From Laetmonice hystrix (Eukaryota): 64,000 nt of DNA. A program made the position numbers and the translations under genes. The stretch's first letter is position 1. Every line of letters begins with the position of its first letter. Below are positions 1 to 53,073 of this stretch, in pieces. The notes under the pieces were generated by a model that was not told where the DNA came from, did not search any database, and was given only the letters and a program-made list of their open reading frames with translations. Where the stretch lies: positions 7,998,001-8,062,000 of the forward strand of contig OZ249452.1 in NCBI GenBank assembly GCA_965235115.1, given 5' to 3'.

Positions 1-190
1 GCCGACCTTTATGAGGTTGAGTTATAGTTTCAAAGGCAGGTTATGTAACCGTCGCCCTTTTATCCTGCGTCCAGGCAGTCATGTATTCCCTCACAAAGAG
101 TAAACTGTGTGGGCTAACATTATATATATACAGCGGCCTATGTACTGGAGACATCAGTTTCTCCTTTGCGCTTGTTCAGTTCAGACAGTT
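1..190 (+). repeat. Split direct repeat A1 (identical to 2883-3072)
   Basis: gccgacctttatgagg...gttcagacagtt occurs at 1-190 and 2883-3072 with no mismatch seen. It probably extends left of the window and contains a TATA-like tatatatatac at ~121-131. Confidence 0.95.
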
Positions 191-312
191 CTTATTTCTT
201 CGTACATGCGTTTGCCGGGTTGGGTCAGAATCAGACCGATTCTCCTGACACAAGATATAGAACAACATGTAGCCAGGTTATGTGTGACTAGGCGCAGCAG
301 AACGAAACCAAG

Positions 313-495
313 ATGTGTTTGACGGCACCTAGATGTCATGAGTGGCTAAGCAGCAGAGGAAAGTTCTGCCCGTATGGCAGAAAATGCAAGTTTCACCACC
401 CAAGATACAGGCGGCGGGACCCAAAATGCAAGGGCGCGGCTAAGATCCCCACGCCAAAAAACGGGAATGCAGGGTCCCGCTACATACCAATGTAG
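313..495 (+). CDS. Mini gag-like ORF, 60 aa, consisting mainly of a CCCH zinc finger and a basic tail
   Basis: ATG at 313 with in-frame TAG at 289-291 upstream. Peptide CHEWLSSRGKFCPYGRKCKFHH is C-x10-C-x5-C-x3-H. It overlaps the RT frame by 52 nt. Confidence 0.7.
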   Translation: MCLTAPRCHEWLSSRGKFCPYGRKCKFHHPRYRRRDPKCKGAAKIPTPKNGNAGSRYIPM

Positions 496-2087
496 ATGGG
501 GCCCTGATTTATGAAGCATGGGCCGAGGAACTCCCCGACGATGACCCAAAGCGTGATTATCTCCTCGAAGGAATCAAACATGGCTTCCATATCACAGACC
601 CAGCGGCAGTTAAAGACCGGGTCGAAGTCGCCAACTATCGGTCAGCGACCTGCGCGCGGAATGCAGGCAAGGTGGAGGCGCAGATCCTGGAGGAGGTTGC
701 CAACGGCAGGTATGGAATCGTGTCCGAGGCCCCAGCAATCGTGTCGGCTTTGGGGGCGATCGAGAAGCGGGATGGACGCGTACGGCTGATTCACGACTGC
801 AGTCGGCCGGCCGGCTCATCCCTCAACGCGTTTGCTTGGCATGATCGTTTCCAATACATGTCGCTGCAGGATGCCATCGATGTGATGCCGCGGGGAGCAT
901 ATCTGGCCAAAGTTGACCTGGCCAGCGCATACAGGTCAGTCAAGATTCACCCGTCCAATTGTGCAGCTACTGGTCTACAGTGGAAGTTTGCTGGTGATGA
1001 CGCTCCAACATACCTGGTAGACAAGCGTCTGCCCTTCGGAGCCAGGCGGTCACCGGAAATCTTCCATGAATTAGGCCAAGCAGTAAGGCGAATCATGGCG
1101 AGGAAAGGCTATGGTTCTATTATCGTATACTTGGACGATTTTCTTATTGTGTCACACAGTAAGGACGATTGCATGCGCACGCTCAACATGCTGATAAGAA
1201 CTCTTCGAAAGCTGGGGTTCGGCATAAACTATAACAAGGTGGACGGCCCACACCAGAAACTCACGTTCTTGGGCATAGTGCTCGACGCAGTCAATATGAC
1301 CATACAGCTCCCAGAAGAAAAGTGTGAAGACATCTTGTGGCATCTTAGACATGCGCGTCAAAAGCAGAAGATAAAGAAACGCGATCTACAATCCCTCGTC
1401 GGCAAGTTGAGCTGGGCCTGCCAATGTATTCAAGGGGGTCGAACGTTTATTCGCCGACTTATCGACCCAATAGCGCAGTTGAAATCACCCTGGCACCGTA
1501 CCCGTGTAACCAAAGACATGCAAAAAGATCTAGATTGGTGGATTGAGTTCATGGATGTGTTTAATGGTTGGACTCCAATGATTGACAACCGGCCAGTGCT
1601 CCCTGTATGGACAGATGCCTGTCTGCTAGCCGCGGGCGCAGTTTTTGGTACGGACTATGTATACACCCCATTTTGTAACTGGCCTGGTGCATCAGGTCTC
1701 CATATCAACCACAAGGAAACACTGGCGATTGAAACTGCGGCGTCACAGTGGGGACACAGATGGTCAAATCACCGCGTGTTCATATATTGTGATAACCAAG
1801 CTGCAGTTGGTATCATAAACAAGGGTAGCTGCAGAGACCCCTTTACAATGGACGCGCTGCGCAGGATCTTCTGGTGGTCAGCCAAGTTTAACTTTAAGAT
1901 AAAGGCCATTTACTATCCAGGCGAAATGAATGTGGTAGCAGACGCAGTATCAAGGTTACATGAACCGCGTGGGTATCAGCGACTCCTATCTGTTGTTGGA
2001 GGAAGGTTTATAGCAGCGGCGCAGTGTCAGGCTAATGAGCGCGTGAGTTACACAGTGTTAGAAGGCCTAAACTATCACCCAACTTAA
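444..2087 (+). CDS. Reverse transcriptase-RNase H (DIRS/Ngaro type), open from the stop at 441-443
   Basis: Motifs LLEGIKHGF, LIHDCSRP, AKVDLASAYRSV, LPFGARRSP, YLDD, LTFLG. RNase H acidic residues in TDAC, KETLA, CDNQ, ADAVSR. No stop over 547 codons. The track start at 672 is a GTG, so the frame is likely entered by frameshift. Confidence 0.95.
   Translation, partial: DPHAKKRECRVPLHTNVDGALIYEAWAEELPDDDPKRDYLLEGIKHGFHITDPAAVKDRVEVANYRSATCARNAGKVEAQILEEVANGRYGIVSEAPAIVSALGAIEKRDGRVRLIHDCSRPAGSSLNAFAWHDRFQYMSLQDAIDVMPRGAYLAKVDLASAYRSVKIHPSNCAATGLQWKFAGDDAPTYLVDKRLPFGARRSPEIFHELGQAVRRIMARKGYGSIIVYLDDFLIVSHSKDDCMRTLNMLIRTLRKLGFGINYNKVDGPHQKLTFLGIVLDAVNMTIQLPEEKCEDILWHLRHARQKQKIKKRDLQSLVGKLSWACQCIQGGRTFIRRLIDPIAQLKSPWHRTRVTKDMQKDLDWWIEFMDVFNGWTPMIDNRPVLPVWTDACLLAAGAVFGTDYVYTPFCNWPGASGLHINHKETLAIETAASQWGHRWSNHRVFIYCDNQAAVGIINKGSCRDPFTMDALRRIFWWSAKFNFKIKAIYYPGEMNVVADAVSRLHEPRGYQRLLSVVGGRFIAAAQCQANERVSYTVLEGLNYHPT
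456..506 (+). promoter_or_regulatory. -1 programmed ribosomal frameshift signal (slippery A AAA AAC plus downstream stem-loop)
   Basis: Heptamer A AAA AAC at 456-462 is in the ORF1 frame, followed by a 7-nt spacer and hairpin 470-506 (cagggtccc/ggggccctg and ctacat/atgtag). The -1 frame is the open RT frame. Confidence 0.75.
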
Positions 2088-2154
2088 ACCAAGCGGCTAC
2101 AGACTGTTACAGACTTAACATGCCTTCGTCAACCTACTCTCTACCTATGGGGTA

Positions 2155-2786
2155 TTGGGTACAGGCATGTCAATAACTCAGGGCTCAACCTTTTGCAAGC
2201 CTAAAGTAAGTGTTCATTGCGGGCACGTGAGCGTATTAACTTTGGTTAAATCAACTTTTGTGCTAGGGCGCGGTTTTGTCTTTGCGCTTGCTTTATGTCA
2301 TTTGTTTTCCAGTGGTAAGAGTCGTCTAAGACGACTAAGGTGTCAGCAGAACTCTTGTTTCACTTATGCTGGTGATGGTTATCAGCCATTTATATACGGC
2401 TTAGTTATCAGTCATTAACATGACTGGTGTGGCAACAGGCAACCTGGCCTAGTGTGTATTTGCGCGGGCATCAAGCTCAATTTAATATATCAGTCAGCGC
2501 ATGTGTGTTTTTATTTGCGTGGGCATCACGCCCCATCTTATTCAATGTCTTTTCTTGGCGCGGGCAGCGCACATATATATGTCGGGTTAGCGCGCTCACC
2601 ACGCCCAAGCTTACTCAATCAGCGCATGTGGTTATACCCGGTAGCGCGCGCATTGTGTTCCATTCGAGGCAAATGTTGTACCTGGGCAGGTCTTCAGCGC
2701 GCGTTAGTCCATGGAACTGTTCTTAGGAGTTTTTAGGTCGTAGTAATAAACTCCCGGTCTTCCCAAACCAGTGTTGAGAGTTTTAA
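2155..2786 (+). repeat. Split direct repeat B1
   Basis: 632 bp, identical to 3170-3801 except one substitution seen (gtgttcattgc vs gtgctcattgc). AATAAA lies near its 3' end. Confidence 0.95.
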
Positions 2787-2882
2787 GGGAAGCTAAAATA
2801 GGAGTTTAGCGTAGTTTAAAACTCGAGTCACCAAGCCTCCGCGCCAATACAGATGGTGCGATAAGATTATCCCCTTAATGGT

Positions 2883-3072
2883 GCCGACCTTTATGAGGTT
2901 GAGTTATAGTTTCAAAGGCAGGTTATGTAACCGTCGCCCTTTTATCCTGCGTCCAGGCAGTCATGTATTCCCTCACAAAGAGTAAACTGTGTGGGCTAAC
3001 ATTATATATATACAGCGGCCTATGTACTGGAGACATCAGTTTCTCCTTTGCGCTTGTTCAGTTCAGACAGTT
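2883..3072 (+). repeat. Split direct repeat A2
   Basis: Copy of 1-190 lying between B1 and B2. Confidence 0.95.
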
Positions 3073-3169
3073 TTTCCCACCCGCCCACCCGTTATACTTT
3101 CTTTTATAACCTGGTGTCCTGTTACCCTGTCTCACCAATTTTAGACTGGAAGAACAGCGTTTTGTTTTC

Positions 3170-3801
3170 TTGGGTACAGGCATGTCAATAACTCAGGGCT
3201 CAACCTTTTGCAAGCCTAAAGTAAGTGCTCATTGCGGGCACGTGAGCGTATTAACTTTGGTTAAATCAACTTTTGTGCTAGGGCGCGGTTTTGTCTTTGC
3301 GCTTGCTTTATGTCATTTGTTTTCCAGTGGTAAGAGTCGTCTAAGACGACTAAGGTGTCAGCAGAACTCTTGTTTCACTTATGCTGGTGATGGTTATCAG
3401 CCATTTATATACGGCTTAGTTATCAGTCATTAACATGACTGGTGTGGCAACAGGCAACCTGGCCTAGTGTGTATTTGCGCGGGCATCAAGCTCAATTTAA
3501 TATATCAGTCAGCGCATGTGTGTTTTTATTTGCGTGGGCATCACGCCCCATCTTATTCAATGTCTTTTCTTGGCGCGGGCAGCGCACATATATATGTCGG
3601 GTTAGCGCGCTCACCACGCCCAAGCTTACTCAATCAGCGCATGTGGTTATACCCGGTAGCGCGCGCATTGTGTTCCATTCGAGGCAAATGTTGTACCTGG
3701 GCAGGTCTTCAGCGCGCGTTAGTCCATGGAACTGTTCTTAGGAGTTTTTAGGTCGTAGTAATAAACTCCCGGTCTTCCCAAACCAGTGTTGAGAGTTTTA
3801 A
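3170..3801 (+). repeat. Split direct repeat B2, right end of the element
   Basis: Copy of 2155-2786 ending gagagttttaa, then AT-rich host sequence. Confidence 0.95.
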
Positions 3802-3927
3802 ATATAGAGAAGCCATTAATATACTGAAGTGAGTGAGTGGTTTTTAAGCAATAATCGCTGAGAGAATAAAGTTTTAAAAACTTGTCATCAGTCGTACTCC
3901 CTATGTACTCTACACTTACGTATAGTG

Positions 3928-4929
3928 TTATTTCTTACAAACTAAAAGTATGGCTCGAATTTCTCTCCGAAACGCCGGTCCACTAACACAGTACAGCACA
4001 AAATTAATGGCGTGATTTGAAGCTTCCAGGATATAAAGTATGACGTAGGCGATAAAAGGCACTGGGAAACCAGCTGTGGTCGTCAGGTGGCACACACCAA
4101 GAGGAACAGTTAGTACGGTATAGCTGACACTTAGAACAATCAATGTGTGTGTTAGGTGCAAGTTCCGCCCCGATATGGAGTCGGTAGAAACCGCGGAGTT
4201 TGACGCGGCTGTCCTGATCCTATTCTGTTTCCTCAGTTTATACATGAGATAAATGTTGCAGGAGCTAATGATAATAGCAGGTAGCAGTGCAAACACGAGA
4301 AGATCAACAATGTTCATTACAACGTTGAGCTGAATTTTGACGTACTTATCCATCCAGACACAGCCATCAGACTCGTTTAGTTCTACCATAGCGATGATGT
4401 AACTATTGCCGACCAACGACACCAGTGTTGTCACGCACACGACAACACAAGCACGGGTCTGACTTAGGAATAATTTGCCCCTTAATGGGAACCTCACAAC
4501 GAGAAACCGCTCAAATGTCACCGTCACAACAAGCCACGCGCTGAGACATCTTGAAAACGTTATGAAGTACTGAACCATCTTACAGGCCCAGTTTGAGCTC
4601 CCATGAATGTCGATTCCTGTCACCAACCAAACCCATCTTGCCGTCATACCGTTGCAAAGCAGGCAGATTGTATCCACGACGGCCAGACTTACCAAAAACA
4701 CAGATGTCGACGACTGTCGAAATTTCCTCCGTAAGAGAATGATCGCTGAGAACATGTTGCCGAAAATACCGAGTGTGAATATTATGGGCATCAAAACAAG
4801 AACGATGTAATCATCTACGGTGCTCGGTTTATGCCTATAATATATGGCGTCTCCTTCAAATCTGGGTGTAAACTCCGTCGTGAATTCAGTTTGTGTTGCA
4901 TTACGATTGGCAATGAACGCCACTGCCAT
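3928..4929 (-). CDS. Intronless class A (rhodopsin-like) GPCR, FMRFamide/TRH-receptor-like orphan type
   Basis: Seven hydrophobic segments, GN in TM1, LAVVD in TM2, C-K in TM3, ERF at the DRY position, NHAINFVLY at the NPxxY position. First ATG at 4929 (MAVAFIANRNAT, with an N-glycosylation sequon). Confidence 0.92.
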   Translation of the reverse strand: MAVAFIANRNATQTEFTTEFTPRFEGDAIYYRHKPSTVDDYIVLVLMPIIFTLGIFGNMFSAIILLRRKFRQSSTSVFLVSLAVVDTICLLCNGMTARWVWLVTGIDIHGSSNWACKMVQYFITFSRCLSAWLVVTVTFERFLVVRFPLRGKLFLSQTRACVVVCVTTLVSLVGNSYIIAMVELNESDGCVWMDKYVKIQLNVVMNIVDLLVFALLPAIIISSCNIYLMYKLRKQNRIRTAASNSAVSTDSISGRNLHLTHTLIVLSVSYTVLTVPLGVCHLTTTAGFPVPFIAYVILYILEASNHAINFVLYCVSGPAFRREIRAILLVCKK

Positions 4930-5989
4930 GGTGACACGTCCACAGCTCCGGTCCCAGCTCAGTACACGGCTACTTTGCAAACTGAAGTCTTCAGGTTCAG
5001 AAACATTGTTATGTTACAGTCAAGGCAGGGAACGGAATTATGTGTGAAGAGAGGCAAAGGTCCTGTGGTTGCGATTGTGAAATAGACCACACGGACTCCT
5101 TGAGAACGTTTGACCCTTGGATTATTATAAAACAAGAGAAGTTCTTATTTTTCCATAAAGCATTATCTAACGTTGGCAGACTTCCAGCATTATCAAGATT
5201 TAATTCTGATTGGATGCCAATCAGCGGAGAGCAGGTCAAATAGCTGATAAGTTCCCATTCTGTCTGATTTGTAATCACTTGGGAATAAAAGGTGGGGCTT
5301 GCTTCGCCGGCAGCGAAATGTTTTTTCATGCGATAGTCGCATTTGATGGACCTTATCGAGTCAAGCAATGGTTCATTATCCAAGCGATGACAGTATCTAT
5401 TGCAGCGATATCTATGCATAAGTTGAAGTGATACATTTTGCGAGATTTATACAATTGTCATTTAATCATACGAGAAGCAAAAATAAAATCGTGAAGCGAT
5501 GATAAACTGTCATGCGATTTCTGGCGATGTATTGAGCCCTTGGCCCTTAAACACGATTTTTACGGTCAAACGCCTTCTCATTGTCTACATTTATATGTTA
5601 ACTTGTTTTTTTTTATCTATACCTATAGTCTGTAGTTTGAAGAGTCCTTTCTAGTGTCTCTAATATACACAAAACCAGCTTTACATCTACCTTATATTTC
5701 CACTTTCAATATAGACCTCTAAGGCTAATTCAACTCAATGTTCAATATCCTATCTACACATCCTTTGTCGTTAACAACCGTCTTAACCGTGTAGGATTGC
5801 AGAAACATCTCTGTGGAACCCTTACCATTTTTCAAAAAGAGTAGGGTATTGCCTCCCGGTGGGAGGTTTCCTTCACACTTCATCGTCTTGACCACCCCCT
5901 CGTGACTCAGGGGGTGGGTGGTGGGTGGGGGTAGGTCTCTTACTGAATTGTTTTATATCGCCCTGAAAATGGCTAAATTTTTTCCCACA

Positions 5990-6499
5990 TGGCATGAACC
6001 CTCCAATTCACTCATTGTGTGTAGGTGATGCTCGGACACAAGCAACACGTGTGTCAGCTGCAAGTTACGCTGACATAAAGAGTCGGTAGAGTTTGACATT
6101 GTTGCCCTTACCTTATTCCGAGGGATCATGTAACTATTGATGACCACTGACAGTAGTGTTGTCACGCCAACAACAACGCAGCCATGAGCCCGGCTGAGGT
6201 ATAATTTGCCTTTTACTGGGAATCTTATAACGAAAACCCGCTGAACTGCCATAACAAGGCACGCACTGAGACATCTAGAAAACCGTGATGAAAACTGAAA
6301 CATTTTACACGCCCAGTTTGAGATTCCAATAATGGCGAACCCTGTCACTTGCCAACCCCACCTGCGGGCTGCTATACAGGCAGATCGTATCCACGAAAGT
6401 CAGACGAATCAAAAACACAGATGTCGATGACTGTCGAAATCTCTTCCTTAGAAGAAAGATCGCAGAGAACATGTTGCCGAAAATACCGAATGTGAACAT
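5990..6499 (-). pseudogene. GPCR pseudogene, paralog of the flanking receptors
   Basis: FTFGIFGNMFSAIFLLRKRFRQSSTSVFL, frameshift, then NWACKMFQFSSRFSRCLSACLVMAVQRVF...NSYMI joined directly to RNKVRATMSNSTDSL (TM5 region deleted). TM7 is absent. Confidence 0.85.
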
Positions 6500-7293
6500 G
6501 ATTGGTTGTTGTCTTCTTCCTTGCTTCTTTTCGGAGTCTGTGTGTAAAATGCAACATGCTTGACCACAACTGCTCGTCTCTATCTCTGATTGAGTACAGT
6601 ACTTCCAGACAATTAAAGTAATATCTGGCTGTCAACTTGACTCAGATTTCTGGGGCCCGTCTTACTAAGAATGTCACTCCCCAAATCAGGGACATCCCCA
6701 TATTGGGGACATCTCTCCAACACTGTTTCAATGGAGGGACCTTTTGGTATTACACCTCACAACGGGGATATCCCTGATCTGGGGATTTTAGTGGGGATTT
6801 TGCTGGATCACCGTTATTGAGATGGTCCCCTGGTTTCGCCAATACAGCTATTCTTCCCAATTGATCAGGGGTGCTAATGTATCAGTCTTTGCTGAAAACG
6901 TAGTATAATATAGTAGCAGTTCAGAAAGAATACTTGCTCAAACGTGAAGGTAGAGCACACAAGAAATGTAAGGAGGTTCCAGATCCATTGCTCGCTAATC
7001 TTTGTTTGCCATTACGCATGGGTCCATGAGAGTTCTTGAGATAACCTGTCTCATTTAATTAACTAAAAAATGTAATTGGGGAAAGTCGTGATAAATTACA
7101 TCAGAAGTGATTCAGACTCTGAAACAAGCTCATCTAACTTTGACAAACATTTTCTTCAGATTACAAACCGGATGTGTGCAATACGGCTGAGGGGACTTCA
7201 AACGGGCGATACGTAACCATGTTACCTGGGGTGCTTGAAAATCAATCTGAAAAAATCACAAATCCAATTGTTTAATGGAGGGACCTTAATTAA

Positions 7294-7643: not shown

Positions 7644-8172
7644 AGGGAGTCGTAAAATTCTTTTTTTTTTCGATTTATGGCAGTCTTAGAAACATATGAT
7701 TCGCATACCTTGGACTCCCAGTAACATCATGTGAGACTGTTATGGCCCAGCGACCAGTATTTAGTAAGGAAAATATGCCAAATCTCTCGCAAATACGTAG
7801 CTCAGAATTAGCGAGCGGCCCACAGGATATTTGAGTTGGCCGTGGTCGGGCGATGATGAAGCGTGATCACGTGACTTCCGGGTGTACATGCGGTATTAAG
7901 GTCAACACTAGACTAGAGGGAGATTCTCTTCCACACCCGGAAGTCACGTGATCACGCGTCATCATCGCCCGACCGCGGCCAACTCAAATATCCTGTGGGC
8001 CGCTCGCTAATTCTGAGCTACGTATTTGCGAGAGATTTGGCATATTTTCCTTACTAAATACTGGTCGCTGGGCCATAACAGTCTCACATGATGTTACTGG
8101 GAGTCCAAGGTATGCAAATCATATGTTTCTAAGACTGCCATAAATCGAAAAAAATGAATTTTACGACTCCCT
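7644..8172. mobile_element. Fold-back Kolobok-type MITE with ~240-bp inverted arms
   Basis: 7644-7885 is a near-perfect reverse complement of 7933-8172, with a 47-bp spacer. TTAA flanks, AGGG...CCCT ends. Confidence 0.9.
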
Positions 8173-8952: not shown

Positions 8953-9897
8953 TTATGCCTCATTAAGCACATATTTCTCTTTAGAAAACATTGCACGTAT
9001 TTCTCGCCGAAACGCTGGACTGCTAACACAGTACAGAACAAAATTGATGGCGTGATTTGAGGCTTCAAGGATGTAGCAAATGAGGTAGATGATGAAAAAT
9101 TCGTCTGACAAACTAACCGCTACAGCTAAATTGTGAATTCCAATGGGAAGAGTCAGCACAGTGTAAGTAATGCTCAGTGCGATCAACGTCTGTGTCAGGT
9201 GCAGGTCCCGCCCAGATAAAGAGTCCGTCACTGCGGAGTTTGACGTTGTTGCCATTAACTTCTTTCGTTTCCTTAGTTTATATACAAGATAAATGTTGCA
9301 GATGGTAATGATAATGGCAGGCAGTAGTGCAAAGATAACAAGGTCAACAATGTTCATCACAACGTTAAGGTGACTTACTATGTACTTTTCCTTCCAGTAG
9401 CATGTACCAGGGCTATAGAGTTCTACCATAGCGATCATGTAACTATTAACGACCAGTGACAGCAGTGTTGTCACGCCAACAACAACGCATCCATGAGCCC
9501 GGCTTATGAATAACTTGCCTTTAAATGGGAATCTTACAACGAGAAACCGCTGTACTGTCACTGCCACAACAAACCACGCACTAAGACATCTTGTAAACGT
9601 GATGACGTACTGCGACATCTTACACGCCCAGTTTGCGAATCCGGCAATGTCGAATCCTGTTACTATCCAAATCCACCTACCGGTCATCCCGTTGCTAAGC
9701 AGGCAAATCGTATCCGCAAAAGCCAGGCTTAGCAGAAACATGTAGGTGGATGACTGTCGAAACTTCTTCCTTAAAAGAACGATCGCTGAAAATGTGTTGC
9801 CGACAATGCCAAGCGTGAATATGATGGGCATGGATACAAGAATGATGCCATCCTCGACCGCGCTTGATTTAGACTCAGTCCTGTTTGATAAATCCAT
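8953..9897 (-). CDS. Intronless class A GPCR, paralog of 3928-4929
   Basis: 314 aa from ATG 9897, 7 TM segments, GN, LAFAD, WACK, QRF at the DRY position, NHAINFVLY. Confidence 0.92.
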   Translation of the reverse strand: MDLSNRTESKSSAVEDGIILVSMPIIFTLGIVGNTFSAIVLLRKKFRQSSTYMFLLSLAFADTICLLSNGMTGRWIWIVTGFDIAGFANWACKMSQYVITFTRCLSAWFVVAVTVQRFLVVRFPFKGKLFISRAHGCVVVGVTTLLSLVVNSYMIAMVELYSPGTCYWKEKYIVSHLNVVMNIVDLVIFALLPAIIITICNIYLVYKLRKRKKLMATTSNSAVTDSLSGRDLHLTQTLIALSITYTVLTLPIGIHNLAVAVSLSDEFFIIYLICYILEASNHAINFVLYCVSSPAFRREIRAMFSKEKYVLNEA

Positions 9898-15243: not shown

Positions 15244-18200
15244 ATGTTTCACATACACCTCGCCTGGCTGTTCTGCGGTAAGATTTCCGACTTAATAATG
15301 TATAGGCTTCTGTCAGTGTGACACAAGAGCCTTGTGCTCCAAGTACTGGCTTCCACTGCTGTTCTCATATTTAAATTTCATCAAATAATGTAATGGAATA
15401 AGAGAGTTTTGCGTCAAGTCCCTTCTTTTTTCTGGTTGTGGGGACCGGAGGACAAAAGCCCTTTTACCTGACGTGTTCTAGATCTAGACTCTATAGACCC
15501 TGTGTCTGCTCTGAAGAAGACCTGAGTTTCTATCTATTATACTGTATACATTTGCATTGTTATTGTCACACTGACGTCACACGTTTACGATCAATGTGTC
15601 TTGGATATAGGAATGTACATGTTGAAGGCCAGTTATATAACGTTATTGTCGTTGATAAAGTATTTCTTTCTGCTCATTAGTGTCCTTTGTGCTGGTATCT
15701 ACATGGGAACTATCGATTCACAAACCCGACGTGAATACGAGTAGCAATACAGGAACCCTCGTCCCGGAACAATATTTGCGCTATGATGCAAGTGGAAGTA
15801 CTACAAATCTGTCCAAATCTATCAAACATGAGGATACTAGTATGGAAAAGGAAGAGATTCTCACAACATCAAGAGTCCTGGTGGCAACAATAGCAGAGAG
15901 AAAACCAAAAAGATACAAACATCCAGCAGGAAAAAAAGTGCAATCCTTCCTGTCTAATAATACAGAGGAATCAAACGCATCAAATATAACAACACAAGAA
16001 ACAACTACATTTGATGGAGGCACAACGTCGTCAGAAGAAGAACAATATCAGTCAACAATAGATCCTGTAGAGATAACAAGCACTTTATTAGAAAGAACAT
16101 CAACAGAACAAGATGAAACACCGACTGAAGAAAATCCAGTAACTACCACATCATATCCAACGACACTTGAAGAAAGTACAACACCACAAGATGAAGAAAC
16201 TACAGCAGCAACAACGAAATATCAAACGACTATCCTAGATGGCGTCTCTACAGAGAAAACAGAGAACCCTACGACAACAGAGGGCGACGTTTTATCAACA
16301 TCGCTTCCTTTAGAGACAAGTACAATATTAGAAGACACATCAACAGTGCAGGATGTGGAAACTACTCCAGAAAAGCTAGCGTCATCGACATCAAATCCAA
16401 CGACAATTTCAGACGAAAAAACTACACAGGAAAGCCATGACACGTCGACAAAAGAAGAGACGACAAGCACTTCACTGGAAACCACGAGAGAGACAACAAG
16501 CGTGAACTTACAAACGACACAAGAAATACCAGATGAAGAAACAACATCTATATCAATGACAACAACTAAAACAACCTCCGAAACGAGTACATTAGAGGAA
16601 GGCACCACAGAGGAAGTAGAGATGACCACGAGAAGACAGGAAGAAATCGCCACAACATCAGTGCCTACAGAAAAGACAACAGGTATAACAGGAAAGACCA
16701 CTCCAGAAATAGAAGAATCGACAACGAATGAAGAACTGATCCCCACATCGAAGTCTGGTGAGACAAGCACAGCATTTGAAAGGACATCAACAATTCAAGA
16801 TGACCAAACAACATCAGTGCCGACGACATCGTATCAAACGAGTATATTGGATGAAGGCACCACGCCTAAAATAGGAGAAACTACGAGAGAGGAAGAGCTT
16901 TATCCAACATCAACTGCTGGAGAGACAATAAGAACCACATTGGAAGGGACGTCTACCTCGGAGGGCGAAGAAACAACGCCCGAGACAACCGAATACCCAA
17001 CGACAAGTAGAGAGAACCCCACGACGGCCGAGGAGCTGGTCTCAACACTAGAGCCGAAAGTGACAACAACATTGGAAAGCAAATTAACAACCATTGCTGA
17101 CAGAACAACTGTAGAAGAATCAACAACAACATATCCGACAACAATGGTGGAGCAAACGACCACACAACAAATAGAGGAATCTACAACAAATGAACTTGTC
17201 TCCACACCAGGGGATAAAGAGACTACGACATTGGAAAGTTCAATTACAACTGATCAAACAACTACAAAAGAACCGAAAGTAACGACAACAATGGGGGAAC
17301 AAACGACCACACAACAAATAGAGGAATCTACAACAAATAAACTTGTCTCCACACCAGGGGATAAAGAGACTACGACATTGGATATTTTAATTACAACTGA
17401 TCAAACAACTACAAAAGAACCAAAAGTAACGACAACAATGGAGGAACAAACGACCACACAAAAGATAGAAGAAACTACAACAAATGACCGTATCTCCACA
17501 CCAGGGGATAAAGAGACTACGACATTGGAAAGTTCAATTACAACTGGTCAAACAACTGCAAAAGAACCAAAAGTAACGACAACAATGGAGGAACAAACGA
17601 CCACACAACAAATAGAGGAATCTACAACAAATAAACTTGACTCCACACCAGGGGATAAAGAGACTACGACATTGGAAAGCAAATTAACAACCATTGCTGA
17701 CAGAACAACTGTAGAAGAATCAACAACAACATATTCGACAACAATGGTGGAGCAAACGACCACACAACAAATAGAGGAATCTACAACAAATAAACTTGTC
17801 TCCACACCAGGGGATAAAGAGACAACAACATTGGAAATTTTTATTACAACTGACCAAACAACTACAAAAGAACCGAAAGTAACGACAACAATGGAGGAAC
17901 AAACGACCACACAAAAGATACAAGAAACTACAACAAATGACCTTATCTCCACACCAGGGGACAAAGAGACTACGACATTGGAAAGTTCAATTACCACTGA
18001 TCAAACAACTACAACAGAACCAAAAGTAACGACAACAATGGAGTTACAAACGACCACACAACAAATAGAGCAAACTACAACCAATGAACTTGTCTTTACA
18101 TCACAAGCCACAGACGAGATGACCACACTATTTGATACGACATCAGCGACTCAAGATGAGGAAACAACATCCACTTCCGGATCGACGCCAACGCCACCTC

Positions 18201-21200
18201 CCGGATCTACAACACCAGCTCCGAAAAAACCGCCAGATCTCGGTTCGTACGATTTGCATTTAACAAAATTGCTTAGTTTGTTCAAACGAATGTGGTGGTA
18301 TTGCTGGTGAGTGGTTTTTTCACATTTACCAGCTGACAATTTTGATAAAAAAAATAATATGGATCGTGCAAAATGTTTTGCTTGCTAACAGAGGATGAGA
18401 CTGTTTTGTTGGAATCAAGTCTGCAATGGGAGGGCAACTTTACGGATGACCTGGCTGATAGCACTTCCGATGCATTCAAGACTCTGCAAAAAGAAGTCAA
18501 GGCAAACGTAAGAACAATAATACGTTACAGTCAGAATAACAAATTGTGTCTACTTCGCTGTATTCAACCGTTCGCATATAGTGTTGTAATTCTGGGAAGG
18601 GATCTATATATAAGAATGAAAACAAAGCATTGCCGTAGAACTGCACTGGCGCTGTTTGCAAATCGGTCATCGATTCGGACCGTATTGTAAAAAGATGCCA
18701 TCTCTTAGTTATGACAGTGTCATCATTATCATCATGGCTACGATTATTTTTAGTATCAAATATTCCCATCCGAGGTATTCATTTTACATGAATAATTATT
18801 CATTTTACATGAATAATTATTCATTTTACATGAATAATTAGTGGATGCAAGAAGATGTATCCTTAATATTATATGTAACTAGATTTCTCATACCTTTTGT
18901 CGATAAGGTGAAAGAAGTTTACAAAGATGTGGAAGGTTTTAACAAAGTGGAAGTCCACGCCTTCCTGAGGTGAGTTGCCTCACTACATATTGCTTTTCAT
19001 ATGTTTTAAAGCATTTTAAACCTTGAAAGACCGGCGGCCTTCCCCCTCTGATGAAGATTGGTCAAATTTGTTTACTAAATACAAGAGTCGACCCGAGTGT
19101 TTTAGGTCATTCAGGCTGTCCCTTATACATTTAAGCGGCAACCAATTTTACAGTGTACATGTTTAAGGTAGAATTGGTTGTAGTACTAATAGACAGAGGT
19201 ATACGATTATATTCCACCAAGTGTCTTCAAGATAAAGTCCCATTTTGAAATATCCTAAAAGGCATGAATTAGCCATTTCTTCTGGAGGGACAGTAATCAG
19301 TTCACCTTACCCAACGATTTCATTTGTACGAAGTATAACGTATACATATCAATAAAAAAGGAACGTAAATATACAAATCTTGGGCATAATTTCACTAGTG
19401 TCTTGCATAATTCTTGCTTTCAAACCCTGTGTTCATATTGTAGGATATCCCCCGATTCGTACCACATGATACCAGCCAAGTCGACCAATGAAATGATCGA
19501 GTCGGTGTATGACCTTGTGTTTGACCTCCGGGCGGCCTTGGTGGCGCCGGAGAGGCTGACCGCCCAGATCCGGAACGCTACGGTCGGATTATATGGAGTG
19601 GTCATCCAGGGTCAACCAGTTGACCCTGACCACGTTAACGACGTCATGGCGGACATGGAAGACGGTAAAGCTCTTCTAGATGTGATTTTAAGAAATAAGC
19701 AGTTTAGATAGATGGATTACTTTTGGAGAGAAATGAGCAGGGTCATGTCCAAAGATTTACAACAAAACCAAGTTAAAGCAGTTTGCCCTCAGTTTCCACC
19801 TTACTGGAACTTCAAAAGTGATACGTAAATAACAGCTTTGCTCAGGTCCCTGTCCCTCCGGGTATGGCATCGGTTACTTCCGGCCAGGGGTCACTTGAGC
19901 TTCCGGTAGGAGGCCCTTTGCCAGGGGTCCCTGTTATGGGAGATGGCTTTCGTCTGGACGGGTCTGATTTTTTTAAAAAATTTTATTTTTTGTTTCTGAC
20001 GTGCAGACTTGGAGGAGATCGGAGGGATTCGTGACACAGTTTGTCAGAACAGGACTCTGTGTGACCTCGATTACAGCTGTGAGCGTGACGACTCGGTCCC
20101 TGAGGGTGTAACGTGTAGTTACAAGTGTTATGGTTACCCGTGCGGCGAGGGTGCCCAGTGTTACATCACAGAAGGTCATGACGCAGCGTGTCGGTAAGTG
20201 CGCGCGCAACTCCTCAATGACGTGCTTCCTCCGCAGACGACATTATGTCACATTTTCAATAAATAGGGGATAACACATCTAAAAACTTCTCACTATATTT
20301 TGGGCATAATAAATATGCAGACGGCATTATGCCATGATCTGTGACACCAACGGTATCGCCATGTATGGAACAAAGTTAAAGAGAGAGATCTTATGTTGAT
20401 GATTCCCTCACTAATTAAGACATAGAATAATTGACGTTTTGTCGTTAGACTGTGTCATTATTTTACGTCATACGTCACACACTTTGACGTTGCGGGTAAG
20501 ATCACTGGGTTGTTTTTACGTCATACGTCACACACGTTGACGTTGCGTGTAAGATCACTGGGTTGTTTTTACGTCATACGTCACACACTTTGACGTTGCG
20601 TGTAAGATCACTTGGTTGATTTTACGTCATGCGTCACACAATTGACGTTGCGTGTAAGATTACTGGGTTGTTTTTTACCCGCCAGGTGTCTCTCCGGCAT
20701 GTTTGACGTATCCGGAAAGTGTGTCAACCAATGGGTGATCATCGGCCCCGTCATTGCTGCCATCGTCTTGATCATCATCATAATGGCAGCAGTCATCATC
20801 AGCGTCAAGGTCAAGCGAGCCCGCAAGGTCAAGGAAAGGTCCAACGAATTCTAGTAGGCATCAATTGTCTGTTCGTCTGTCTGCTTTTGAAGGGCAACAC
20901 TCGCCCTTCAAAGAGTGGGATATTTCTATCGTAAATCAAATGGGCAGACTACCGTACCAAGCACAATTTATTTTAAATATGTTTAACGAACATAACTAGC
21001 GTTCCATGTTACCCCCATCATGGCGACGACTGGATAAACTAGTTACTACGCATACTATAGAGTTACAAAAGATACATCACCTGCAGCGCCCTCTATTGGC
21101 ATTAAATGGCATCGTCTGTCAGCAATCCTTCTTTGTTTCCCGTGGGGACACTGGAGACAATAGATTCATTATCTACCATTTTTGATTTTCACAATGTTTT

Positions 21201-24200
21201 GGCCGTGAAGATAGCGACACTGCCTAAAACCACCACCTTTCACTCCCTCATCCTATGTATTGTTTGTATTTGGTAGCCTTGACGACTACAACGTACCCGA
21301 GATTACGCCGTCTGTGAGTCCATTCACACAGATCTACGACCAGGTGGAGGAGCAGGCGGCTAGGTCTGGTTTCTCTGGGCCCCTGGCAGAGGGAGGTGAC
21401 ATTGAGGGGGATGAGGTGAGTACAAGCAGGTGGACCGACAGGCGGCTAGGTCTGGTTTCTCTAGGCCCCTGGCAGAGGGGGGTGACATTGAGGGGGATGA
21501 GGTGAGTACAAACAGGTGGACCAACAGGCGGCTAGGTCTGGTTTCTCTGGGCCCCTGGCAGAGGGAGGTGACATTGAGGGGGATGAGGTGAGTACAAACA
21601 GGTGGACCAACAGGCGGCTAGGTCTGGTTTCTCTGGGCCCCTGGCAGAGGGAGGTGACATTGAGGGGGATGAGGTGAGTACAAACAGGTGGACCGACAGG
21701 CGGCTAGGTCTGGTTTCTCTGGGCCCCTGGCAGAGGGAGGTGACATTGAGGGGGATGAGGTCAGTACGAACAGGGTGTATTAAAATGATGGGGTGACCAA
21801 CTTCAGTTCCCTTTAGATTTGGCAAATTATTTGCGGCTGCCTTCAAATCATTACTCGTAAAGATGGTTAGAAAGTCAGCGAGGACTCGAAGTAGAAATAT
21901 CTGAATAATCTAATCTGATGCTAAGGTTACGGGCGAAAATGAGTTCTATACCGGAATAATAAATATTTGTGGAAATAATATATATATTTAGTTCCGACGG
22001 AATTTATGGGGAAAGTAGAAGTTCAAATAAAGTTGATAGATTCAATGTCCATTTCACTGCAGCAGTTAAGTAACAACATGAAAAATAATTGTTTAACTTG
22101 TATAAACGCCAATCTTGTATAGAAAATGTTGTGGACATACCCCTACCAAGTTCCTGTTTATTAACAAAGAGTCATATATACTGATATATTTACAGTCCAT
22201 ACGAACGCAAGTTGGGGGTAAAAGGACCAGCTTACCAAAATCGACGTACGATGAAATACCGGCGACATTTGTGGTAAGGGCCTTTTCAAATTAATCTACA
22301 ATACATTTCATGGGCCCTATTTTATGTACAGGGCGGATTATATTTTTTCTTTCCTTTTTCTTATTCTCCAAAAAAATGACCTTCGTATCCAATGGCCAAT
22401 TCGTAACTAAGGCAGAGGTTTGAATAAGGAAAGTCTCGCAACCTCTCGTGATACGCGTTATAACATGTGGTTTGTGTGGATACCTAGGACCCCCCACGGC
22501 GCACCAGCGATCTTCATGACTACGAAAACGTCACCGGGGAAGACCTGCAGAGGGAGTTTATAGACATTGCAGACAAAGTGGGTAGAATTATTTTATCACT
22601 TCTAGATAGTTGGTTAAAAACAATCAAAACAATCACAATCAAAACCTACCAACTTTTGATTCTTTTTAATTTGTATCATAGTTGGAGATTGTTGTGACTC
22701 AGTTCGGCTAGAATCTTTGGACGCCACTTTATAATCGTCTTTAAAGGGAATATCTCACGAATTCCAAGTCATACGTAGCGTTTCACACAAAAATATGTCT
22801 GCATTGGGGGTCTCCAATATGATCCAAAGCTCCCTTACCTTTCGATGTGAACTTTGCGGGTATTATGTAAAATACATTCAAAAAGTCGCCAAATATTAAT
22901 TCCGGTCACTGAAAATGACCTACTTAGCTTCCGAGACCTCGGTAGTTGTTTATTATATTCCTATGTACACTGCTATGCAAATTATTTGTACTAGCGAAAA
23001 TAGATTTCGAATCTACACCAAAAAACAACGTTCAAACGATTATTACTAGGGATAATTTTTACAGCTCTTCCTCAGAGGTGTTAGCAGAATCAATATGAAA
23101 AACATTCAGTGCCATAAAGTACGTCAGTGGTGAGGAAGTGAGCATTAATCTGAAAATTCCGGCCTATCCGCCGGGTGAGATGATCCCTTTAACATAGCAG
23201 CCAGACAAATGTGACCATTCGACGACAAATGGCATCCTGACTGAGATATCTTCACGGGGAAGCACCCTCTAGCTGACGTATGATTGACGTACTAGCGCCA
23301 ATAAGATCGTCGCAATCAGAGATCATATCGAGAGTGTCAATCTGTGGATATCTAGTGTAGTCATTCATCTCAAACATATCGTCATAGTGAAGGTGGGGTG
23401 TGATAATAGGACTATTGTCTATATCGAGGTGGAAGGTTACGGATTAGTTGTGAATGGCTGTCAGCAACGGTTGACCGTCTCTATGACAGGACTAAGGTAT
23501 TTTGTCCTATATTTCCCTACGTTCTTGTCAATGAAATGACAACAACTCAGCTAGGAAGTCAGTTTTCTGGGCGGTGGGGTGGGGTGCGAGGGGTCTTAAC
23601 GGAAGGGTTTCCTGTAATTCTGCCCTATGTCTTATGTTGTCCCCCAAAAAACATTATGTCCAGATAATTTCTCAAATATGTCATTTTGGCACAGATTTCC
23701 GAAGCGAGTGATCTTTCAATAGACCAAAATGCTTACAAGAGCCTCGATACAATCAGGCTCTGAAATTTAATGGTGTATGCTAGTTTTCTGAGATAATAAT
23801 GAAAAACACATTTTTCTCGCTAGGAGATGACTTCCGGTAGTTACATCGGGTCAGATAACGTTGATGCGACGCCACGACGTATAACGTCCGCAAGAGGGCG
23901 CCAAGCTCCAGTAAGAGACCTTTTGTCATCCACTGCTGTATTGAATATTTGCTTATATATTTATTTATTTTAATTGGGGGGGGGGGGGGGAAGGAGCGGC
24001 TCTAGAGTTGGGTTGGGTAACAATGGGGAGAGAAAAAGAGAAATTGTGTTTAGTTATAGACGATAGTTTTGTAAGAAAAATTCGCAACGCAACGAAAATA
24101 ACAATAAATTTGAAGAACACTGAAAGGGAAAATGCGCATCCTCTGTACTATATCGAGTATTAAAATAAAGTAGTCCTATGTTGACTATTATAAGGCGATA

Positions 24201-27044: not shown

Positions 27045-30000
27045 CTAGCGTCCGGAGGTCGTACTTTTGGCGAATCCTTGAGTTGCTTCGAAATATGACG
27101 GAGGGGGCGCGGTCTCCGTGTTTAAAGGGGTCGCGTGGGGGTCAGGGGCTCGCCAGTACGACTCGGCTGTACTGTAACCCGGCCGGAAGTCGGACATTGC
27201 GAACGGTTCACCGAGTCTGTCACCAGGGGGCGCGTACGGCGGCGGTTGGTCGCTTTCCGAAAGCGAGGCTGAAGGGTTTGGATTGGCTGGCGATGTTACC
27301 TCTGGAATGTACAGAAGATTACACGATATTTATTTCTACAAAAGAAGGCCTGAAACCTATGTAGGTAAAAGCTACTGATAATTGTAAAATGAATTAAATC
27401 TGTATTGTTTTCAAGAACTAACACGCCACCCGTGCTGAAATAGTCGACCCTTAACAAACGTCTAGATTTAGTCTGAGACATTAACAACGTAGACTTATTT
27501 TGTTATAATAATAAAGTTTTAAAGTGGCATGTTAAATTACACAAAAAGCTATATTTTATCATCGACAACACTATGATAAAATTCCATGTTTGAACGATGA
27601 ATGAAAGTATATCACTGGCCGTCCGGTTACCTTTCGGACCGACTTCTATCGTTCAAACATTACATTTTAACATGGTGTTGCTGAGGATAAAAGGTAACCT
27701 TTTGAGGAATTTAACATGCCGCTTTAATATCATTGTCTAGCCGTTCTTACGTGTTGATGGTGGCAACATGTGTCCTAGACCTTCAACGTTCAGCTCAGAT
27801 GGCGAAGGCCGATCATTGTCTGCAATAATACCATCTCGATTGTAATAGATTTTTTTTTAAATATTTTTATATTTTTCTACACAAAAGTAAATTCACATAC
27901 ATACAGGACTACCAGGACGATCCATATGTTTACAAAAGAAGACACATTTACGGGTACATATACGACAGCACACTTACTCTTACAATTTACGTATCAACAA
28001 AAAACATACATTTACAGGTACACACATACACATACACATGTATTTGACAGCACGCTCATTCCTTAACATTTATACAGTACATTTACATTTGTAATAAATG
28101 GTGATAATTTAACGGACAAGGTATAGCAGTTATTCTCAGCACCGTTTTAAGGCGAAGACGTGCACAATAATACTAACATTCATACATGCGGAAGGCGGGA
28201 AACATATCGCGTAGATATTCAAAATGAAAAGATATCATATTCATAACACTTGCCTTCTGTTGCGCGCTGAGCAGAGAGTCTTCGGAGGGATACGGCCGGG
28301 GCGGCCACCGCCGACTGTGTTCTGAGCCTGGTCTTTAGGACATGTTCTAAAGCACAAAAAGCGGAAGGCTAAACTTAATGCTTATTTTTACATATTTCTA
28401 ATTATGTATTCTAAAGAGATAATGGCTATACACACAGTTAGACGAAGAGGTAGATCTACTCTCCTTAGATTATTTTACAATATATTGGTTCTCTGTTTTA
28501 AAGTAATATTCTCGGGATATTTTGAACACTTTATCACGTTGTCCGCTTTGATTACAAGGTCTACGGCTACACCTTCTTGATGCGATCTCTGGACACTGAT
28601 TGCTAACATTCTGAATTCTTGACATTGTACGCAATCAGGTAGAAACATTAATCGTTTCAATCATTCAACGTAACATCGTTAGGTGGAAAAGCTGGTTCTA
28701 TGCCTCGTTCCTAATATAACATTCCGAATTCTTAGTACGTGAAACTTGTACGAACTGTAATAGATCCAGGTAAGGACTGTTGTTCCAACAGAAACTCCCA
28801 GAATAATCAGTGACCACGGTTGGATTGCATTTCCAACGCGTCTGTTCAAACATAAAAACAAAATTCAGCGCAATATAAGTGCAGTGCAACTAAAAGATGA
28901 TTAATAATACATCAACGAATAAGAAAGATAAAGAAAACGACTAGGGCCGTAAATCTTAATTAAGTCCATCGGTGAATTTTCTAAATTAGTCACCACGCCA
29001 CCGAAAATATCCATAACTTTTGCATCACACTATCATTTTAGAGGATTGAAACAATTCGAGATAAATTAATACTCGACCAGAGCCGCATAGCCAGGCTAAG
29101 CGGCCACTTCCGGTCTCTTTAAAAGAGAAACTCCGTGCCCCCGGACCTCCCTAAAATTTGCACCCCCCTTGATTTTACGGTACGGCCTGTATCTGTCTCT
29201 GTCTTGTTCTTTGTCTATCTATCTTTCTTTATCTGACTCTGTCTCTGTCTGTCTGTCCGTCTGTCTCTCTTTCTCTCATGTCCTGGTCGTCCTTACTTGG
29301 GCTGGCAGCAGAACTCGGCGTAGGAAGGTCCACAGCAGGCGGTGTAGGATGGCGGCTCGAACGCCATCGGGCAGACGAACACTCCCAACGTCATGTTCCC
29401 GTGATTCTCGTAGTTGACGCATGCGCCTTTGACTGCAACCGTTCACGTCATTATACATATTATCGCTCATGTGAGGAAAAANNNNNNNNNNNNNNNNNNN
29501 NNNNNNNNNNNNNNNNNNNNNNNNNNNNNNNNNNNNNNNNNNNNNNNNNNNNNNNNNNNNNNNNNNNNNNNNNNNNNNNNNNNNNNNNNNNNNNNNNNNN
29601 NNNNNNNNNNNNNNNNNNNNNNNNNNNNNNNNNNNNNNNNNNNNNNNNNNNNNNNNNNNNNNNNNNNNNNNNNNNNNNNNNNNNNNNNNNNNNNNNNNNN
29701 NNNNNNNNNNNNNNNNNNNNNNNNNNNNNNNNNNNNNNNNNNNNNNNNNNNNNNNNNNNNNNNNNNNNNAATATGTATTTANNNNNNNNNNNNNNNNNNN
29801 NNNNNNNNNNNNNNNNNNNNNNNNNNNNNNNNNNNNNNNNNNNNNNNNNNNNNNNNNNNNNNNNNNNNNNNNNNNNNNNNNNNNNNNNNNNNNNNNNNNN
29901 NNNNNNNNNNNNNNNNNNNNNNNNNNNNNNNNNNNNNNNNNNNNNNNNNNNNNNNNNATATACATGTATGTACTGGCAGGGCAGCTTACCTGATGGTGAG

Positions 30001-39889: not shown

Positions 39890-45795
<5,906 letters not shown>

Positions 45796-52140: not shown

Positions 52141-52860
52141 GCTCTCTCCCACAATAAACTCCGAAACTAAGAGGATGGCGAACATGTATACATGACACGT
52201 CGTAACCTTTCAGTACCATGGTCCACGCGAGAGTCACATACCAATACAATAGTTTGTCCCTCTCTCTCCCACAATAAACTCCCAAACTAAAGATACACAG
52301 AATTGTGAACATACATGACACGTCGTAACCTTTCAGTACCATGGTCCACGCGAGAGTCACATACCAATACAATAGTTTGTCCCTCTCTCTCCCACAATAA
52401 ACTCCCAAACTAAAGATACACAGGATTGTGGACAGACATGACATGTCGTAACCTTTCAGTACCATGGTCCACGCGAGAGTCACATACCAATACAATAGTT
52501 TGTCCCTCTCTCTCCCACAATAAACTCCCAAACTAAAGATACACAGAATTGTGAACAGACATGACATGTCGTAACCTTTCAGTACCATGGTCCACGCGAG
52601 AGTCACATACCAATACAATAGTTTGTCCCTCTCTCTCCCACAATAAACTCCCAAACTAAAGATACACAGAATTGTGAACATACATGACACGTCGTAACCT
52701 TTCAGTACCATGGTCCAGGCGAGAGTCACATACCAATACAATAGTTTGTCCCTCTCTCTCCCACAATAAACTCCCAAACTAAAGATACACAGAATTGTGA
52801 ACATACATGACACGTCGTAACCTTTCAGTACCATGGTCCAGGCGAGAGTCACGCCCCAAT
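52141..52860. repeat. 123-bp satellite, ~5.5 copies
   Basis: catgaca(c/t)gtcgtaacc at 52191, 52314, 52437, 52560, 52683 and 52806. Confidence 0.95.
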
Positions 52861-53073
52861 ACGATAGTTTGTAGTTTGTATGTCTGCCGTGAGAATACCA
52901 TCGTAGGATATCATAAACGGTTCATGAACCCCTCAAACTCCTGTTCTTTTACTCTTTTTGCCAAACCAGTTTGGTTTCAACAACCGTAAGACGTTCGGTT
53001 TAATAGGGTTAATGGGTTCGAGGTAACCCTAATGCCTACTTTATTAGGGAAACTGTGTTTTACGTAAGAATAA

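Follow-up and report, generated by a model that had tools for sequence, protein, structure and literature searches.

A reduced retroelement at the window edge

The stretch of DNA analysed here, called the window below, comprises 64,000 nucleotides of the Laetmonice hystrix assembly GCA_965235115.1 (contig OZ249452.1, positions 7,998,001 to 8,062,000 of the forward strand, read 5' to 3'). Its first 3,801 positions hold a retroelement with split direct repeats in the order A1...B1-A2-spacer-B2. Between A1 and B1 lie a small open reading frame (ORF1) with a zinc finger and an overlapping frame for a reverse transcriptase (RT) and RNase H (RH), joined by a candidate frameshift signal; a frame for a tyrosine recombinase (YR) is absent. 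The parts of the element are given in Table 1, together with those of a second element, nested in the related locus L096, that is discussed further below.

Table 1. Parts of the element in the window (window positions) and of the nested element in locus L096 (positions of that locus).
Feature	Position	Strand	Remarks
A1, 3' part of the 5' split direct repeat	1–190	+	equals 2883–3072; TATA-like run TATATATATA at 121–130
5' leader, A1 to ORF1, 122 bp	191–312	+	comparable spacing in L002 (128 bp)
ORF1 ("mini-gag"), 60 aa	313–495	+	frame 1; one CCCH zinc finger and a basic tail
RT/RNase H frame, 546 codons	444–2087	+	frame 3, stop-free; −1 relative to ORF1; stop 2085–2087
−1 slippery heptamer A_AAA_AAC	456–462	+	ORF1 frame; 11 codons ahead of the ORF1 stop
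Putative frameshift-stimulating hairpin	465–510	+	core arms 470–478 and 498–506; 7 nt past the heptamer
Linker, 67 bp	2088–2154	+	in relatives a ~1-kb YR ORF occupies this spot, between RT stop and B1
B1	2155–2786	+	AATAAA at 2745–2750
A2, full-length A	2787–3072	+	2883–3072 matched by A1; starts with GGGAAGCTAAAA
Unique spacer A2-B2, 97 bp	3073–3169	+	C-rich motif CCCACCCGCCCAC at 3076–3088, near its start
B2, 3' end of the element	3170–3801	+	AATAAA at 3760–3765
Nested element in L096	a1 4984–5134; ORF 5106–6002; b1 6068–6272; a2 6261–6411; b2 6535–6739		bounded by a shared TCAT core

An earlier note, made from the letters of the window alone, had described repeats that are essentially identical, a stop-free RT-RNase H frame, short distances from A1 to a 60-codon CCCH ORF (about 120 bp) and from the RT stop to B1 (67 bp), and had found no YR motif in the frames that were read. 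All of these observations held when they were measured. The A copies agree at 190 of 190 shared positions with no mismatch and the B copies at 631 of 632 (sole mismatch 2213 T / 3228 C), which amounts to 821 of 822 bases over both repeat pairs. According to the published replication model, repeat pairs are near-identical when inserted (PMC6681497); at this degree of identity the insertion in the window is therefore recent. As far as its sequence can tell, the window copy is young, structurally intact and apparently working.

The identity of the repeats breaks off abruptly at 190/191 and at 2786/3801. A1 is clipped by the window edge, and A2 directly adjoins B1 at 2786|2787, as in the full copies L097, L098 and L001. 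Because B1 abuts A2 at this position, the full A repeat is probably 286 bp long (2787–3072); the element would then start about 96 bp to the left of position 1 and have a total length of about 3.9 kb. The element region is free of runs of N. No second copy of the element was found within the window, no inverted repeat in positions 1–3801, and no Rfam match in positions 1–4200 at the E-value threshold.

In each B copy an AATAAA finishes 36 nt short of the end, and this hexamer is kept, along with the B end ...GTTTTA, in L001, L097, L003 and L002. The TATATATATA run lies inside both A copies (121–130 and 3003–3012). AATAAA and this run probably serve the element as poly(A) signal and promoter, respectively. 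The spacer between A2 and B2 measures 60–130 bp in relatives; such a spacer, of about 30 bp, is likewise present in VIPER/SIRE (PMC6681497).

Near-identical repeats at the edge of a window are a classic spot for assembly errors, and the arrangement could in principle stem from mis-joined or collapsed repeats. However, the order A1...B1-A2-spacer-B2 recurs in diverged relatives, in independent assemblies and in metagenomes, and the layout has been published as characteristic of Ngaro, PAT and VIPER elements (PMC4157794; PMC9210276; PMC6681497). The probability of an artefact is, in our judgement, negligible. Two other identities were tried and given up: Troyka, an LTR (long terminal repeat) superfamily, was dropped on account of its true LTRs and different termini, and an LTR retrotransposon of the Gypsy, BEL or Copia type was rejected, as the repeats are split into A and B-A-B instead of forming two whole LTRs and no integrase match was obtained.

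ORF1 contains one finger of the pattern C-x10-C-x5-C-x3-H, which is matched weakly by Pfam zf-CCCH models (E 1e-4 to 2e-3, all under the curated cut-offs). In a BLASTP comparison with the 425-aa gag of L002 it aligns (E 9e-7) only with residues ~377–397, the C-terminal finger, and a tblastn search of the window with two family gags returned nothing beyond ORF1. Judged by these alignments, the 60-aa ORF1 is the C-terminal zinc-finger remnant, and nothing more, of the ~400-aa gag of the relatives.

The RT frame has no ATG ahead of the RT domain, and the overlap with ORF1 has the make-up of a programmed −1 frameshift site: an X_XXY_YYZ heptamer, a 7-nt spacer within the 5–9 nt range of such sites, a stable hairpin and the RT ORF in the −1 frame. 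The hairpin has a minimum free energy of −27.7 kcal/mol (z −5.3), and none of 200 shuffled sequences folded equally well. A consensus fold of four sequences (the closest loci with DNA) retains the hairpin with 11 pairs, of which one is preserved through changes on both sides (CG/UA/GC) and three are changed on one side. Of the 95 related loci scanned, about 38 have AAAAAAC at the corresponding position and in the corresponding frame, and in L001, L093 and L094 it sits directly ahead of the ORF1 stop. In animal systems A_AAA_AAC is among the most shift-prone heptamers known (PMC5009743).

Within the RT frame, motif A lies at ~909, YLDD at 1128–1139 and RNase H at ~1596–1955, and YLDD as well as the acidic residues of RNase H are retained. 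The protein matches RVT_1 in Pfam (E 6.9e-14) and the RNase H models weakly. Its AlphaFold model (mean confidence score, pLDDT, 83.5) aligned in Foldseek with the RT-RNase H of MMLV, CaMV, HERV-K, foamy virus, Ty3 and HIV-1 (E 2e-20 to 1e-14 over 445–602 alignment columns), and residues ~19 to ~518 align with the RTs of YR-bearing relatives. In an alignment of 15 RT sequences the invariant columns are all present in the window protein, by construction. Neither the alignment nor the fold (Pfam, Foldseek) revealed any domain besides RT and RNase H; in particular, no methyltransferase-like domain follows RNase H, and the ORF ends about 45 aa past the last RNase H motif.

The absence of a recombinase was examined in the whole window and in the remaining frames of the element. 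When two YR proteins of the family were used as tblastn queries against all 64 kb, the best E value was 0.9. Pfam searches of nine other ORFs of the element, including B-repeat and antisense ORFs, yielded no match of any kind, and no rve/DDE integrase hit was obtained.

A recombinase-less clade in a Ngaro-type family

A protein search retrieved more than 870 relatives of the RT, the best at 74% identity (the closest relatives named later, P0001, P0002 and P0051, are at 74–77%). The DNA of 98 related loci in all was collected from assemblies, from metagenomes and from contigs of eukaryotic origin that had been wrongly binned into bacterial metagenome-assembled genomes (MAGs). The relatives come largely from marine-invertebrate-associated samples, and none was found in the viral contigs of IMG/VR when these were scanned with the RT alignment.

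Locus L004 presents the full layout, with a long gag, RT/RH and then a 354-aa ORF that reads HSFRRGGA...GDWRS...Y and matches Phage_integrase at E 8e-5, under the curated cut-off. Used as a query, this YR was found directly after the RT in most loci with enough downstream sequence, while the 425-aa gag of L002 located a gag directly ahead of the RT in most loci. Most of 92 related loci combine a gag (~400 aa, CCCH), RT/RH and YR with A1...B1-A2-spacer-B2 repeats, without a methyltransferase; the two-ended loci L044 and L085 read A1, gag, RT/RH, YR, B1, A2, a spacer of ~60–130 bp, B2. Ngaro elements are defined structurally by the lack of a methyltransferase domain and by internal repeats downstream of the YR (PMC4157794; PMC9210276). 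By structure and by linkage to YR-bearing relatives, the RT of the window is placed in a large family of Ngaro type that occurs in marine invertebrates. The reading of the earlier note needs a qualification here: the element descends from ordinary Ngaro elements, and its sister lineages have a ~400-aa gag and a YR.

Circular permutation or a tandem arrangement is seen in some contigs of YR-bearing relatives. L086 contains the B-A unit twice (3483–5490) and has identical contig ends, L037 has identical contig ends of 64 nt, and on the contig of P0019 a gag lies 478 bp past the YR; these contigs are compatible with head-to-tail arrays or with sequenced circular junction forms. L004 and L085–L092 are animal retrotransposon contigs deposited in bacterial MAGs (Methylococcales, Sedimenticola, Flammeovirgaceae, 'bacterium Vin_4'), most likely through contamination of symbiont or metagenome bins with host DNA.

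In a maximum-likelihood tree of 66 RTs, the window element and its mini-gag relatives form one clade of 10 with a support of 100/98. L002, with a long gag but no YR, belongs to the sister of this clade (moderate support, 82/82), and outside the mini-gag clade stand P0019, with an adjoining YR, and P0028, which has a gag and probably also a YR. The layout of a mini CCCH ORF1, A_AAA_AAC with a hairpin, RT/RH and B-A-B recurs in RT relatives 57–77% identical from at least four other samples. Among clade members with readable flanks the gag is a zinc-finger remnant of 43–60 aa throughout, except in L003, which has no ORF1. In L001, L093 and L094, ORF1 is 43–46 aa long and starts with ME[LF]C, and heptamer and hairpin are as in the window.

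No YR was found between the RT stop and B1 in the window, L001, L003, L095, L097 or L098, nor within the 330–420 bp available downstream of the RT in L093 and L094, a length over which a YR is normally detectable (L022, L051, L060). Near P0001 and P0002 (74% identical) the gene calls contain no ORF of the size of a gag or a YR. Because the reduced design is common to the whole RT clade in several genomes, we regard it as inherited, not accidental. The most economical reading of the tree is that the YR was lost first, the gag was truncated next, and both changes preceded the diversification of the clade.

Within the clade, the proteins are 57–77% identical, every ORF is intact and no sequence has a stop codon. 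The synonymous divergence could not be computed by the NG86 method, as synonymous sites are too near saturation, and differences at fourfold-degenerate sites were used instead; these amount to 61–72%, against ~75% expected at saturation. Fourfold sites near saturation together with conserved proteins and intact ORFs are the pattern expected if the RT of the clade has been under long-term purifying selection.

Insertions other than that in the window could also be compared. L001, L095, L097 and L098, all from one assembly, are separate insertions with 93–95% mutual identity and different flanks. L001 and L097 are complete at either end, with the precise termini GGGCTGAAAC...GTGTTTTA and without target-site duplication; L098 is about 10 bp short at the 3' end, and L095 lacks the first ~530 bp. 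The protein clusters of the relatives contain 13–22 distinct members located on different large contigs.

These data bear on the question of whether the window copy is a one-off relic, i.e., an ordinary Ngaro copy that lost its gag and YR by internal deletion after insertion and is now inert. More distant relatives do carry a full gag and a YR, remnants with a deleted YR are frequent among the family's loci (e.g., L015, L027, L037, L061 and L070), and the window contains a single copy. A one-off deletion would, however, leave unexplained why both losses and the layout of ORF1 are common to the 100/98 clade over several samples, why the ORFs are intact although fourfold sites are near saturation, and why a mini-element family has made at least four independent insertions in another genome; moreover, the repeats of the window copy are almost identical and its frameshift signal is intact. 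We therefore consider a relic largely refuted and very unlikely, in line with the earlier note, which had argued against a random deletion. Its further proposal, a streamlined element that reverse-transcribes itself without an integrase of its own, is supported by the same comparison, through the recurrence of the layout, the single clade and the near-saturated fourfold sites with intact ORFs.

A different origin of the same pattern would be recurrent deletion, with a full-length master of the sub-family persisting in each host genome and repeatedly giving rise to short-lived mini copies. Loss of the YR clearly does recur in the wider family (it affects L002, L005, L009 and L019, which belong to separate clades), and the sampling per genome is tiny. 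Against this stands the shared start of ORF1: in L001, L093 and L094 it begins immediately ahead of the finger with ME[LF]C..., despite an RT identity of no more than 71–74% and a difference of 65–67% at fourfold sites. In addition, all clade members with readable flanks lack a long gag and a YR of their own, and the only YR located within a clade member, in L096, is part of a foreign element, separately inserted and with its own repeats. Recurrent deletion thus appears unlikely to us.

Proposed working and proposed supply of a recombinase in trans

Taking these results together, we think it rather likely that the window element is a member of a persistent Ngaro sublineage that lacks a YR and carries a mini-gag; it would have kept an intact RT, lost the YR and most of the gag, and be supplied with YR in trans. 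Transcription would start inside A1, past the TATA-like run, and end at the AATAAA-defined end of B2. Ribosomes would begin at the ATG of ORF1, and most of them would terminate once the 60 aa are made and release a small zinc-finger peptide that binds nucleic acids. Some would instead slip by −1 on A_AAA_AAC before the hairpin and produce a zinc-finger-RT/RNase H fusion; the signals are observed, and the frameshift itself is predicted from them. The fusion protein would then copy the RNA of the element. By analogy with the established split-direct-repeat model, as proposed for Ngaro and PAT, the internal B1-A2 junction would act as the bridge that joins the ends of the cDNA into a B|A junction. 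Integration would finally be carried out by a tyrosine recombinase provided in trans by presumably co-resident YR-encoding elements.

The non-coding DNA of the sub-families cannot be aligned, save around the junction of B end and A start (window, L001, L003 and L002). The conserved junction and AATAAA lie where a recombination site and a poly(A) signal would be expected.

Alternatively, the lineage could be independent of any recombinase, its linear or circular cDNA entering the genome through host recombination or repair or through an unrecognised activity of the zinc-finger-RT/RH protein. No YR was seen in the own sequence of any clade member, and long persistence without a YR is compatible with this idea; integrase-less reverse-transcribing elements do exist, as in hepadnaviruses and caulimoviruses. 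The ends of the insertions are nevertheless precise and conserved (GGGCTG...GTTTTA), without target duplications or terminal deletions, which fits site-specific recombination and would be unusual for capture by repair. The only conserved non-coding DNA is the B|A junction, as for a recombination site, and the RT protein has no extra domain. We judge a recombinase-independent lineage to be improbable. Should it be true after all, a zinc-finger-RT/RH protein and split repeats would suffice, and animals would harbour an integrase-less class of split-direct-repeat retroelement. A recombinase acting in trans on the mini-gag sublineage is favoured because the ends are precise without target duplications, the junction is conserved, and a nested element without RT exists in L096.

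This nested element (L096:4984–6739, 1.74 kb) has split repeats and no RT, and interrupts an L001-family copy downstream of the RT stop and ahead of B. Its ORF encodes an N-terminally truncated YR of 298 aa, in which the catalytic R..K..HxxR..W..Y is retained and which is ~30% identical to the YRs of the family; a protein cluster 94% identical to it has 9 members. As it has no RT, the nested element must be mobilised by proteins from elsewhere, and it makes action in trans plausible for split-repeat elements. We considered whether its YR is the 'missing' YR of the L001 family and rejected this, given its own a1...b1-a2-spacer-b2 repeats, the TCAT core and the ~30% identity to every YR of the family. 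A two-part system of an RT-only element and a YR-only partner was likewise downgraded, as the L096 YR is ~70–90 N-terminal residues shorter than its full-length homologues P0187 and P0188. This YR, truncated and of a different sub-group, is not claimed to be the donor.

A C-rich motif, CCCACCC[G/T/A]CCCA, was observed directly 3' of A2 in the window (3076–3088), in the L001 family (L001:10846), in the nested L096 element (L096:6413) and in L086 (L086:4352). The 13-mer of the window is identical to that of the nested L096 element. On the opposite strand it gives G3-N1 tracts that could form a G-quadruplex, and it also resembles GC and CACCC boxes.

Several points weigh against a persistent sublineage served in trans. 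The 5' end of the window copy lies beyond the window edge. In L003 both ORF1 and the slippery site are gone, hence not every copy is functional. The absence of a YR is based on gene calls only for P0001 and P0002 and on short flanks for L093 and L094. The Ngaro label derives from structure and from linkage to YR-bearing relatives rather than from a tree with curated Ngaro, PAT or DIRS reference RTs. Finally, no YR donor was seen within the 64-kb window.

DIRS-order elements are defined by their tyrosine recombinase. The mini-gag clade would have been without one for long enough that fourfold sites came near saturation, and would meanwhile have kept its polymerase under purifying selection and kept inserting. 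This is the reverse of the usual decay, in which non-autonomous elements normally shed the polymerase first, and it raises the question of which retroelement proteins need to work in cis, on their own RNA, and which may be provided by one element to another. The clade may serve as a natural system for studying recognition of the B|A junction by a YR. Surveys based on the YR, e.g., PMC4157794, would miss it. In the open-access literature we found no Ngaro or DIRS lineage without a YR, although one may be described elsewhere, e.g., in Repbase; as far as this literature shows, a YR-less, mini-gag Ngaro sublineage has previously been unreported.

Neighbouring features and comparison with known systems

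Downstream of the element, the window contains a cluster of intronless ORFs of rhodopsin-family G-protein-coupled receptors (GPCRs) at 3928–4980, 5953–6348, 8953–9897 and 53074–54174, all on the minus strand, whose best named relatives are in rotifers and nemerteans, so that the host would probably be a spiralian. The cluster includes a truncated tandem duplicate (4136–4788 and 6038–6505 are 73–84% identical). An inverted repeat at 7818–7885 / 7933–8000, with 68-nt arms that are 97% complementary and 47 nt apart, may be akin to a miniature inverted-repeat transposable element. Tandem arrays were found at 40759–42520 (28-bp unit, 63 copies), which accounts for a strong GC skew and a 375-aa 'ORF'; at 17136–18095 (147/453 bp), inside an 876-aa ORF at 15680–18310; at 52188–52872 (123-bp unit, 5.6 copies); and at 21341–21774 (86-bp unit, 5 copies). 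Three runs of N, assembly gaps or masked sequence, occupy 29482–29769, 29782–29957 and 35244–35523.

Among known systems, Ngaro-like elements share with the window element the split direct repeats A1...B1-A2-B2, whose internal copies lie towards the 3' end, and an RT/RH without methyltransferase; its RT nests among elements with gag, RT/RH and YR, and the relatives L001 and L097 are inserted without target-site duplication, as is usual for the group. The window element differs in that it has no YR ORF, that its gag is a 60-aa CCCH peptide, that this reduced state is clade-wide, and that its RT is predicted to be expressed from that peptide by a conserved A_AAA_AAC −1 frameshift.

The gag-pol −1 sites of retroviruses have the same X_XXY_YYZ heptamer A_AAA_AAC, 7-nt spacer and stable hairpin, with pol in the −1 frame, whereas the upstream 'gag' of the window element is only 60 codons long. 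A parallel in another order is the gag-defective BARE2, which parasitises BARE1: it keeps part of its coding capacity and obtains the missing protein in trans from an autonomous family. BARE2, however, has a DDE integrase and true LTRs, and it misses gag, while the window element misses the integrase and most of the gag and keeps the polymerase.

SIRE, a non-autonomous VIPER derivative of Trypanosoma cruzi, resembles the window element in being without a recombinase, in that it would need helper proteins, and in its A2-spacer-B2 end (PMC6681497). SIRE is, however, a non-coding remnant of ~0.4 kb (A2, ~30 bp and B2), whereas the window element keeps an intact RT/RNase H, apparently under selection, and full repeats. 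PAT-like and DIRS1-like elements are related retroelements with RT/RH and YR, and PAT shares the split direct repeats and in many cases a gag with a zinc finger (PMC4157794). In contrast to the window element, PAT and DIRS1 encode a methyltransferase-like domain, and inverted terminal repeats with an internal complementary region are found in DIRS1; the window element has neither.

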